From positions 2,196,485 to 2,260,484 of the forward strand of contig MU053431.1 of assembly GCA_013239625.1 (NCBI GenBank): a DNA stretch of 64,000 nt. Direction: 5' to 3'. The position numbers were made by a program, and so were the translations under genes. This document shows positions 7,801 to 10,800 of this stretch, piece by piece (the stretch's first letter is position 1; each line of letters opens with the position of its first letter). Source of the stretch: Lama guanicoe. Its lineage: Eukaryota. The notes beneath the pieces were generated by a model that was not told the DNA's origin, did no database searches, and saw nothing but the letters and a program-made list of their open reading frames with translations.

Positions 7801-10800
7801 GGCACCGTACGCCGCCCTCTGCTGCTTCGTTGGGGCTGGACATGTGCTGGACGCTCAGGGACCTGGCCTTGATGAGCCCTGGGGCCTGGGTGCTGGTGGG
7901 TGGGCGGCAGGGCCGAGGCGAAGGGCAGGGGCTAGCTGTCCCAGCCTCTGAAGGCTGCAGAGTGGGGACCTGGTCCGAGGGCGACTGGCAGGCCGGCTGG
8001 GGCTTGACTGGCTGGTCTGGGCCACAAGACGGGGAGGGGGAGGGGCCCCTGCTTTCGAGGTGGGCCTGCCCTTGGGGCTCCGGCCAGAAGCGTGGGGCAC
8101 TGGCCGCCTTGTGCATGGACTCAATGAGCCGCCGGCAGTTGTCCTTGACCACGGATGGCCGCTTCATGAGGAGCAGGCGCGGCACGACGTCCAGGAAAAC
8201 GCGGCGGACCCAGGCGGGCATGGTGTGCGTGCGCGGGGAGCGGTGGTGCACGTTGAGCACGAAGACCGTGATGACGATGGAGAGTGTGACGAAGATCATG
8301 GTGAAGAGCAGGTACTCGCCGATGAGCGGGATGACCAGCGAGGTGGACGGGATGATCTCGGTGATGAGCAGCAGGAAGACGGCGAGCGAGAGCAGCACGG
8401 AGATGCAGAGCGTGATCTTCTCACCGCACTCGGACGGCAGGTAGAAGACGAGCACGGTGAGGCAGGAGATGAGCAGGCAGGGGATAATGAGGTTGACCGT
8501 GTAGAAGAGCGGCAGGCGGCGGATGACGAAGTAGTAGGTCACGTCCGCGTAGACCTCCGCGCAGCAGTCATACTTCTTGGTGTTGTAGGTGCCGGCGGCG
8601 TTGACGATGGCCCACTCGCCGCTCTCCCAGTAGTCCTTCAGGTCCACCATNNNNNNNNNNNNNNNNNNNNNNNNNNNNNNNNNNNNNNNNNNNNNNNNNN
8701 NNNNNNNNNNNNNNNNNNNNNNNNNNNNNNNNNNNNNNNNNNNNNNNNNNNNNNNNNNNNNNNNNNNNNNNNNNNNNNNNNNNNNNNNTTGCACCCGCCC
8801 GTCGTGGAAGAGGTGGGCCTTGGTCAGGTGGGTGACAGCAAAGTCCCCGTCCGCGCTGGGTAGGAGAGAGAGCGTGGTGAGACGTCCCCGCCTGCCGCAA
8901 GTGCACCCCCACCTCCCGGTGGCTCTGCCGGGGGTGGGGCGGGGCTGGGCTGGGCCTGCGGCCCACCTCGGCTGTCACCCCTGCGCCGGGGCCGACATAC
9001 GGCGGGGACTGTCTCCGCCGTCCACACCATACTCGACACCCACGCTTGCTGCTGGTGATGACAGTGGTCATCTGGGCTGAAGCAGCCATGTCGAGAGCTC
9101 CAGACGCACAAGTGGCCCCCGGGCAGCACTCAGAATGCCTCATCCCCTGCGGTCACTCGGGGCTGGGCCAAAGTTGGAGTGAGACCTATCTGGCCACCTT
9201 CTCCTGCCCCAGACCGTGCGTGCCAGTGACGCTGAGCACTCAGCACCTTCCCCCACTGACCCTTCCCTGAACCTGAGGCAGGAAGGACCCCCCTTCCTGC
9301 ACAGGTGAGAACTCTGGGGCCCGACAAGGCAAAGACCAGGCCAGGCCTCCTGAGTGGGACATGGACACCACCCATCACATTCCAGGCCGTCAGCCCTCCT
9401 GCCTCCCCCTCAGCCCGGGGGCCTTGTCCACAGGCCGGGGTGGGCGGCAGGGTGAGGGGTGCTGTCCCCGGCCCTCCTGCTGCGGGCAGAACACCCAGCC
9501 CGCAGCCCTGGTGCTGGGCCTCCCTGACAGTGCCATCCACCTCAGTTTTCTTCACCAAAGATGTCCACAGAGGGGAGGGCCACAGCACAATGAGAGGGGA
9601 GGCAGCCAGCCTGTGGGGACACGGGGACACCCACACACAGCTCCCCAAGAGTCCCGTTTGCTCCAGAAGGGGGCCACTCTCTCCTTTGCACTGGATGCGC
9701 CTGGCCCCCAGTCTGGGTCCTGAGTGGGTGTAACCTGGACCTTGGGGGGCGGGGAGGGGCACTCTGTCAGCCTCAGTTTCCCCATAAAGACTGAGCTGTC
9801 CACTCCGGGTGTGGTGCCCACAGACACACGGAGGCGACAGCCATCCCCCTGCCAGCTTCGGCTCTGAAACGTGGCCTGGAGACCTCCTCTCGTCCCCCCA
9901 GGACATCCCCGCAGACAGCTGGTCCCAGGACTGAGGCACTGGACGCTGGTCATCACGCTTCTTTGTCTCCACGACATGTGCTGAGGGTGCATCTGGCCCC
10001 AGGAGGTCCTCAGAAGGGCCCGGAGCTGGCCTTTCGCTCTGTACTAGGGAGCCAGCCGCCCGGCAGAGCCCCAGGAAGGAGCAGCTCTCCCCGAGGAATG
10101 TTGTCACCACCGCATCAGTCCTCGTTCCTCTTCCCGCAGCTGCATCTACCATGCCAGCGGAGACAAAGCACCTCTCCACACTGCCTGGTCCCACATCCCA
10201 CTCCCAGCAGGGCTGTGCCCCTGGAAAGCCCAGGGGGCGTGGACGTCAGGACGGAACGGCCCGACTGTGAGCCTGTTCCGGACCTACCACAGGAGCTGTG
10301 GCCAGCACGGGCGGGAAAGGAGGACCCGGTCCTGGGCAGCCCAGGTTCCTGCTCCAGAGATGCCCATCCACATAAGATCCCCAGCCCGAGGGGCCAATGT
10401 AGGGGAGCCCCCCAGTGGACAGCACGGCCTCTGGCCTGACTTAGCCCAGGATGCTAGGTCCTGGGGCACGGGGAGCTGGGGGAGCTGAGTGTGAACCCCA
10501 GGGGGACGGGGCAGGGGGAACTGGAGGACTCCAGGGCTCAGGGTCGGCCCAGGCGGCCTGCAGAGGGAGCACAGAGAGCCCGCCCCACCTTCCACTCACC
10601 GAGCTGGGCCCCCTTCGCGCCTTCGTGCTGCCCCACAAACCGTCCCCCTCGCACGCGGCTGCTCTTCCTGCTGCCATGGCTGGAATCAATTAAGTTGGGA
10701 AGGAGCCCAATCGTTCTTAATCAAACAGCAGCGTTTTGTAGGTCAGGTCTGACCCTGGGGGCCTGAGAGGGGCTTTGTGCAGGGCTTTGCAGGGTCTTGG

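Follow-up and report, generated by a model that had tools for sequence, protein, structure and literature searches.

A CHRNA2-type ligand-binding tract in camelid CHRNA4, very probably acquired by interlocus gene conversion

We analysed a stretch of 64,000 nucleotides from the guanaco, Lama guanicoe (assembly GCA_013239625.1, contig MU053431.1, positions 2,196,485 to 2,260,484; this whole stretch is hereafter called the window), which carries CHRNA4, the gene encoding the alpha4 subunit of the nicotinic acetylcholine receptor. Exon 5 of this gene was found to be a mosaic, in which a contiguous tract including loop F and loop C of the ligand-binding region is of the type found in the paralogous alpha2 subunit, encoded by CHRNA2, while the rest is of alpha4 type. 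In the mammalian brain, nicotine is bound with high affinity mainly by the alpha4beta2 receptor, and the loops that bind the ligand belong to the most conserved regions of the receptor family. It is very probable that the mosaic is the product of a real, camelid-wide interlocus gene conversion from CHRNA2 to CHRNA4, which would have happened once, in stem camelids. Understood in this way, the tract is a new example of a known process, and no paper describing a CHRNA2-to-CHRNA4 transfer in camelids was found in the literature that we searched.

The mosaic structure of CHRNA4 exon 5

We aligned 15 non-camelid mammalian alpha4 and 15 mammalian alpha2 proteins with four camelid alpha4 proteins and alpaca alpha2, and took as diagnostic the 56 columns at which each paralogue is at least 80% uniform and the two have no residue in common. 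Camelid alpha4 proteins are alpha2-type at 11-12 consecutive diagnostic columns, spanning residues 178-235, and are never alpha2-type at any other. Eight of the 12 clustered columns fall in the part of the tract that is visible in the window. Upstream, residues 7-152 are alpha4-type at all diagnostic columns except residue 24, which is of neither type in all four species, and residue 48, which is of neither type in alpaca only; residue 154 is also of neither type in camelid alpha4. Downstream, residues 338-623 are alpha4-type at all 20 columns (residue 479 of alpaca is of neither type), including columns 606-623 in the last coding exon. The probability that 12 of 56 columns would be contiguous by chance is about 8e-11.

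Phylogenetic trees of the tract and of its flanks are incongruent. With the 95 columns of the tract, the non-camelid alpha4 proteins form a clade that excludes camelid alpha4 (support 100/99), and camelid alpha4 is placed among artiodactyl alpha2. Forcing artiodactyl alpha4 to be monophyletic on the tract costs 46 log-likelihood (lnL) units and is rejected by the approximately unbiased (AU) test (p = 2.7e-5). With the remaining 539 columns, camelid alpha4 is placed within alpha4 with a support of 100.

The visible part of the tract spans the beta8-beta9 loop (loop F region), beta9, loop C with its vicinal Cys pair, and the start of beta10. In alignments to PDB chains, the visible 44-residue segment is identical to human alpha2 at 39 positions (5fjv, 85 bits) and to human alpha4 at 32 (5kxi/8ssz, about 70 bits). 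Other mammals give the same picture, with 43/45 identities to Bos alpha2 and 42/45 to alpaca alpha2, as against 31-33/45 to alpha4 of pig, whale, cow and horse. When a 54-residue segment was searched alone against 5.8 billion proteins, the top non-camelid matches were ruminant CHRNA2, at 96%. Compared with the artiodactyl alpha4 consensus, the visible tract has 12 differences, which in human mature numbering are R171M, Q174L, L175K, F177Y, V184A, D187N, V189A, R195K, E198D, P205A, I207V and A210Y; further differences in the masked part were judged from Camelus and Vicugna proteins.

An earlier note on this DNA had quoted an exon 5 peptide with an alpha2-type segment between alpha4-type flanks. 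We confirmed both observations: the translation of window positions 7300-8650 on the minus strand equals the quoted peptide, and the sequence is alpha4-type both upstream (8789-8855) and in the rest of exon 5 downstream. The same note had regarded YNT as an alpha4-type feature within the segment, which was mistaken, since alpha2 normally has YNT in ruminants, carnivores and bats. YYF is likewise normal for mammalian alpha2, and the human YAF is the exception. The V and A of AEVYAD occur in ruminant alpha2, and the V in alpaca alpha2 as well. Because YNT, YYF and the V and A of AEVYAD all occur in alpha2, the whole visible segment is alpha2-like.

The visible tract is bounded in the window by a run of N between Q152 and M199 (camelid alpha4 numbering), which hides residues 153-198 and conceals the first part of the converted tract. 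Statements on these residues rest on Camelus and Vicugna database proteins, in which alpha2-type states begin at residue 178. The run has the expected length and keeps the reading frame, and therefore it acts as a length-preserving mask rather than as an assembler gap of arbitrary size. At the other end, the 3' breakpoint lies in an interval within which alpha2 and alpha4 are identical at the protein level; TVNL and PSECGEK, downstream of the tract, are alpha4-type. Since the flanking blocks are near-identical between the paralogues, both breakpoints are bracketed rather than finely placed.

Distribution across species and the CHRNA2 donor

The tract is identical in the alpha4 of Camelus bactrianus, C. 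dromedarius and C. ferus, and that of Vicugna pacos has one difference (N-A-T instead of N-A-A). About 110 other alpha4 proteins, from placentals, marsupials, monotremes, birds, reptiles, amphibians and basal fishes, are all alpha4-type here. Among the 423 alpha2/alpha4 proteins scanned, a long run of the wrong type was found only in camelid alpha4 and in one metagenome contig, and the scan found no camelid protein with an alpha4-type tract. We also considered whether the tract is a retained ancestral state; this was ruled out, as the alpha4 of marsupials, monotremes, sauropsids and amphibians carries an alpha4-type tract. Based on these comparisons, the tract is a synapomorphy of the Camelidae as a whole, which makes it old and not private to this genome.

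Between Camelus and the lamines, the tract has 0-1 difference, compared with 13 elsewhere in 388 residues, which suggests purifying selection on the chimera. That the tract is nearly unchanged between Camelini and Lamini points to a chimeric subunit that has been kept under constraint and is in use. As a separate observation, the N-A-T sequon is intact in alpaca alpha4 and reads N-A-A in the window and in all three Camelus species, a pattern that may reflect parallel loss, polymorphism or incomplete lineage sorting.

Alpaca CHRNA2 (P0397, found via a cluster listing) is alpha2-type throughout the tract at the protein level in this one camelid species, and the transfer was thus non-reciprocal. 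Met199 is common to camelid alpha4 and alpaca alpha2, with Thr or Ala in other artiodactyl alpha2, and the Val of AEV is likewise common to camelid alpha4 and alpaca alpha2. The sharing of these two residues indicates that the donor would have been a camelid-lineage CHRNA2. Two other subunits, alpha3 and alpha6, were tried as donors and ruled out, with 53 and 48 bits respectively against 85 for alpha2.

The alpaca alpha4 tract differs from that of alpaca alpha2 at 2-3 residues, of which the visible ones are YNT/YNS and YAD/YPD. It follows that the alpha4 tract is a genomic sequence in its own right, which has gone on evolving after the transfer, and these differences are the strongest argument against a chimeric assembly. 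In addition, the Ala that replaces Pro after the second loop-C Tyr (codon GCG in the window) is common to all camelid alpha4 and absent from alpaca alpha2, so it is probably a substitution that postdates the conversion. The Pro of YPD has been replaced repeatedly: camelid alpha4 and ruminant alpha2 have Ala, and Ser is found in the alpha4 of bovids, hyena and aardvark as well as in the alpha2 of Tamandua. In bovids, alpha4 also reads WDSGEW where WESGEW is usual.

At the DNA level, a metagenome pattern scan that demanded Val in AEV, and so excluded human alpha2 and alpha4, returned one contig (L001), which is a ruminant-type alpha2 contig starting inside the tract. The nucleotide identity between the window and this contig is 92% in the 3' part of the tract, 93% in M1-M3 (longest perfect run 62 nt) and 61% after M3. 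The identity of 93% across M1-M3 (window 8150-8578, minus strand, against positions 21-449 of the contig) is unusually high for such old paralogues, and could reflect codon-bias saturation or repeated undetected exchange.

The proposed conversion and competing explanations

We propose that an ectopic, non-reciprocal conversion took place in the last ancestor that camels and llamas share, and that part of exon 5 of CHRNA4 was thereby replaced by a copy of the corresponding part of CHRNA2. The replacement would measure at least 61 codons (residues 178-238) and at most about 95 codons (residues 155-249 or so); it begins at the end of the Cys-loop, takes in loop B, beta8-beta9 (loop F) and loop C, and reaches into beta10. 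Between two near-identical blocks of the paralogues, the exchanged segment is the sole variable stretch, and these flanking blocks plausibly gave the homology for strand invasion. The product would be an alpha4 subunit with loops A, D and E, M1-M4, the cytoplasmic loop and the C-terminus of alpha4 type, and with loops F and C of alpha2 type. Camels and llamas split roughly 15-25 million years ago, and the transfer would be older than that. CHRNA2 and CHRNA4 lie on different chromosomes in human. The earlier note had also suggested interlocus conversion from CHRNA2, and this suggestion is now strongly supported by the contiguous donor-type run, the incongruence of the tract and flank trees, and the camelid alpha2 markers.

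An assembly or annotation chimera was, according to the earlier note, an equally good fit. In that case, CHRNA2 and CHRNA4 reads would have been joined via the near-identical blocks, and the true camelid alpha4 would read DQLDF/YECC. The paralogues do have 93% DNA identity with perfect runs of up to 62 nt beside the tract, and similarity of this degree suffices to lead a de Bruijn assembler astray. A mosaic of exactly this kind, with the direction reversed, is seen in a metagenome contig (P0396), and the support across the tract in the window comes from the assembly. However, the same tract is present in the alpha4 models of four other camelid species from separate assemblies, the alpaca alpha4 tract differs from the species' own alpha2 (T/S, A/P) and bears changes private to camelid alpha4, and the scan brought up no camelid protein whose tract is of alpha4 type. 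The run of N, which the note had read as a sign of assembler confusion, also turned out otherwise: it is a mask that keeps the frame and has precisely the 138 nt expected, and the note's main argument for mis-assembly thereby falls away. On the strength of the four other camelid species and of a tract unlike alpaca's own alpha2, the artefact is rejected, and we regard such a chimera as extremely improbable.

It is also very improbable that selection or biased mutation moved camelid alpha4 residue by residue to the alpha2 states, without any transfer of sequence. Single positions do change repeatedly, for example the loop-C Pro, which gave way to Ser in the alpha4 of bovids, hyena and aardvark and to Ala in the alpha2 of ruminants; the Y, N and K states are also seen in alpha4 of non-boreoeutherian species; and the locus is extremely GC-rich, so that biased conversion could speed substitution. 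Yet convergence of this kind would have to account for at least 12 changes that are all to the alpha2 state and all contiguous, with 0 of the 40+ other diagnostic columns changed, that include the camelid alpha2 lineage marker Met199, and that have no intermediate among the approximately 110 alpha4 sequences. A further explanation accepts the same transfer and differs in its template, which would have been CHRNA2 mRNA or cDNA, used during the repair of a break in CHRNA4 exon 5, and not chromosomal CHRNA2. The tract lies wholly within one exon, leaving no intron sequence by which an RNA origin could be excluded, and chromosomal pairing is rarer for genes that, as in human, are on different chromosomes. 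Nevertheless, there is no positive evidence for an RNA template, both templates predict an identical product, and for dispersed paralogues ectopic conversion from a chromosomal template is better documented; we consider the RNA-templated version improbable.

Several points weigh against gene conversion as we have described it. The continuity of the tract in this genome rests on the assembly and on other camelid species, and the 5' breakpoint lies under masked letters in the window. The metagenome contig P0396 is a mirror-image chimera, and such mosaics can arise in short-read assembly or recur naturally. We found that 14 DNA runs, from five organisms and seven studies, contain 0.86-0.91 of the 31-mers of window positions 7300-8650, but the tract makes up about 10% of this query, so that these shares show the locus to be widespread rather than recovering the tract's own words. 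The evidence for conversion is at the protein level, the donor reference is a single camelid alpha2 sequence (alpaca), and the DNA comparison covered one ruminant alpha2 contig. In that comparison, the tract (92%) and M1-M3 (93%) are about equally similar to the ruminant contig, with a GC content at third codon positions (GC3) of 0.96 in both genes, and nucleotide identity is therefore no marker of the tract. Lastly, the AU test did not reject a single clade of all alpha4 including camelids on the tract (p = 0.27), and nor did it reject a grouping of camelid alpha4 with alpha2 on the non-tract columns (p = 0.115). Both of these looser constraints are uninformative, because in an unrooted tree a basal attachment, such as camelids at the base of alpha2, satisfies either; the species-tree constraint is the only informative AU test on the tract.

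A broader proposal, which we consider rather unlikely, is that exon 5 of CHRNA2 and CHRNA4 is a recurrent, bidirectional exchange hotspot in mammals and that the camelid tract was fixed for changed receptor behaviour. The cases would be the camelid transfer from alpha2 to alpha4, an apparent transfer in the reverse direction in Kogia CHRNA2, and the mirror-image, suid-like contig. The behaviour affected might be the sensitivity to agonists or plant alkaloids at the alpha4(+) face, or the alpha4(-) loop F face at alpha4-alpha4 sites; alternatively, an N-glycan may have moved from the Cys-loop sequon to N-A-T, with this site later lost in Camelus and the window. The CHRNA2 protein of Kogia breviceps (P0384) resembles alpha4 from loop C onwards and into M2 (R, E, V, I, TVNL, PSEC). 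Its M1-M3, a region that is otherwise invariant, carries about 10 substitutions unique to it, and either a reverse conversion or a decaying gene is possible. The suid-like sequence is P0396, an ENA metagenome contig in the Sus CHRNA2 cluster, which has an alpha2 backbone and is alpha4-type at exactly the 12 camelid-converted columns; it may be a real alpha4-to-alpha2 conversion in a suid or a chimera of short-read assembly.

Functional context and the CHRNA4 locus

The converted tract, as proposed above, brings changes to loop C and to the loop F region. In loop C, E198D and P205A flank the residues Y197, C199-C200 and Y204, and the Tyr residues of the window's loop C align to Y197 and Y204 of human alpha4. 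Three more changes, Q174L, L175K and F177Y, are in the beta8-beta9 (loop F) region, which on the minus side is turned towards the adjacent subunit. Camelid alpha4 keeps loops A, D and E and the C-terminal Trp in the alpha4 state. The alpha4 Cys-loop sequon N-C-T reads N-C-K in the Camelus and Vicugna proteins, as in alpha2, and the alpha2 sequon N-A-T arrives with the tract, being kept in alpaca and reading N-A-A in Camelus and the window. Altered glycosylation and altered agonist pharmacology are both conceivable consequences.

Laboratory chimeras of alpha2 and alpha4 are functional, with half-maximal effective concentrations (EC50) of acetylcholine of 7-76 uM compared with 31 uM for alpha4 with beta4, and their potentiation by steroids is altered (Jin and Steinbach 2015, PMC4684330). 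Like camelid alpha4, these constructs are alpha4 subunits with alpha2 extracellular segments. However, the laboratory swaps concerned the D-to-A and E loops (PMC4684330), whereas the camelid swap is the loop F to loop C block. Moreover, the camelid subunit retains the alpha4 C-terminal Trp. By analogy, the likeliest outcome in camelids would be a working receptor with modestly altered properties.

The camelid case resembles other mammalian interlocus conversions between dispersed paralogues in being a short contiguous donor-type tract (about 180-290 bp) in an orthologous gene, with the donor unchanged, breakpoints in blocks of high identity, and incongruent trees for tract and flanks. It differs from them in that the paralogues are ancient and unlinked, with no tandem cluster, and in that the evidence here is at the protein level. 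It also differs in that a ligand-binding loop of a neurotransmitter receptor has been replaced, fixed and conserved across the Camelidae.

If the conversion is as old as proposed, an entire mammalian family has had an alpha2-type loop F and loop C block in its alpha4 since before the camel-llama split. Such a natural chimera would indicate that this block can be exchanged in vivo, and it provides a clean construct with which to compare alpha2 and alpha4 binding sites and to study alpha4-alpha4 interfaces. It would also be a documented case of conversion between two ancient paralogues whose human counterparts occupy separate chromosomes. In practice, camelid CHRNA4 is unsafe as a plain orthologue in selection scans, where the tract would mimic a burst of positive selection.

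CHRNA4 is complete in the window, with colinear coding exons on the minus strand at about 4.7-14.8 kb, as determined by local tblastn with alpaca alpha4 (P0250). For exon 5, the query was residues 125-588 of this protein, and window positions 7767-7816 were masked. Exon 5 encodes the last part of the extracellular domain, followed by M1-M3 and the greater part of the M3-M4 loop, and is bordered by an acceptor AG (8856-8857) and a donor GT (7481-7482). The coordinates of the tract, the exons and the neighbouring features are given in Table 1.

Table 1. Features of the CHRNA4 locus in the window (window positions)
Feature	Position	Strand	Basis or remark
Visible CHRNA2-derived tract, residues M199-Y238	8531..8650	-	Identities to human, Bos and alpaca; diagnostic columns
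Exon 5, 5' part, alpha4-type	8789..8855	-	Window letters; diagnostic columns through residue 152
N run, 138 letters = 46 codons, in frame	8651..8788	.	Letter count; residue offsets; ungapped tblastn across the run
N-A-A	8594..8602	-	N-A-T sequon in the alpha2 donor and alpaca alpha4; Thr lost in the window
Loop-C vicinal Cys-Cys	8561..8566	-	Aligns to C199-C200 of human alpha4
Ala codon GCG after loop-C Tyr (aligned to Y204)	8546..8548	-	Pro in nearly all alpha2/alpha4
3' breakpoint interval, Y238 (last alpha2-type) to V250 of TVNL (first alpha4-type)	8498..8530	-	Less strict markers
CHRNA4 upstream coding exons	14617-14829, 12009-12065, 11779-11889	-	tblastn; alpha4-type
CHRNA4 exon 5	7483..8855 (tblastn match 7481-8872)	-	Sequence, translation, ungapped tblastn
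CHRNA4 last coding exon (M4 and C-terminus, C-terminal Trp included)	4691..4813	-	tblastn, residues 588-628, 100%; alpha4-type
KCNQ-channel exon	53613..54356	-	Pfam PF03520, E = 1.8e-11

Exon 5 was searched as a single exon. The part that follows the mask (window 7486-8650, minus strand, 388 aa) matches human alpha4 (8ssz_A) with E = 2.7e-190, spanning M1-M3 and the alpha4-specific M3-M4 loop. The hallmarks of a CHRNA4 orthologue are present, namely the loop-C vicinal Cys pair with its flanking Tyr residues, and the alpha4-specific N-terminal exons, M3-M4 loop and C-terminus. Human alpha4 (5kxi/6cnj/8ssz) has in common with the window the exon structure, M1-M4, the long M3-M4 loop, the Cys pair, Y197/Y204 and the gene neighbourhood. 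A KCNQ exon nearby on the same strand supports the identification of the window as the syntenic CHRNA4 locus; we take this neighbour to be KCNQ2, from the CHRNA4-KCNQ2 neighbourhood. The best database match of exon 5 is camelid alpha4, and its 388 residues differ at six positions from alpaca and at 14 from each of the three Camelus species. Taken together, these features identify the gene in the window as the orthologous CHRNA4 of a lamine camelid, distinct from the individual behind the alpaca RefSeq protein.

Some residues are private to the window. An Ala codon, GCC, at 8381-8383 (minus strand) lies in M2 (SLAVFLLL), where alpaca, Camelus and all other aligned alpha2/alpha4 have Thr; the codon either reflects a substitution specific to the window or is a base error. 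Two further residues of the 388-aa peptide, His303 and Leu341, also belong to the window only. Further runs of N are present at 2584-2932 (349 letters) and 17793-17861 (69 letters), both outside the CHRNA4 coding exons.

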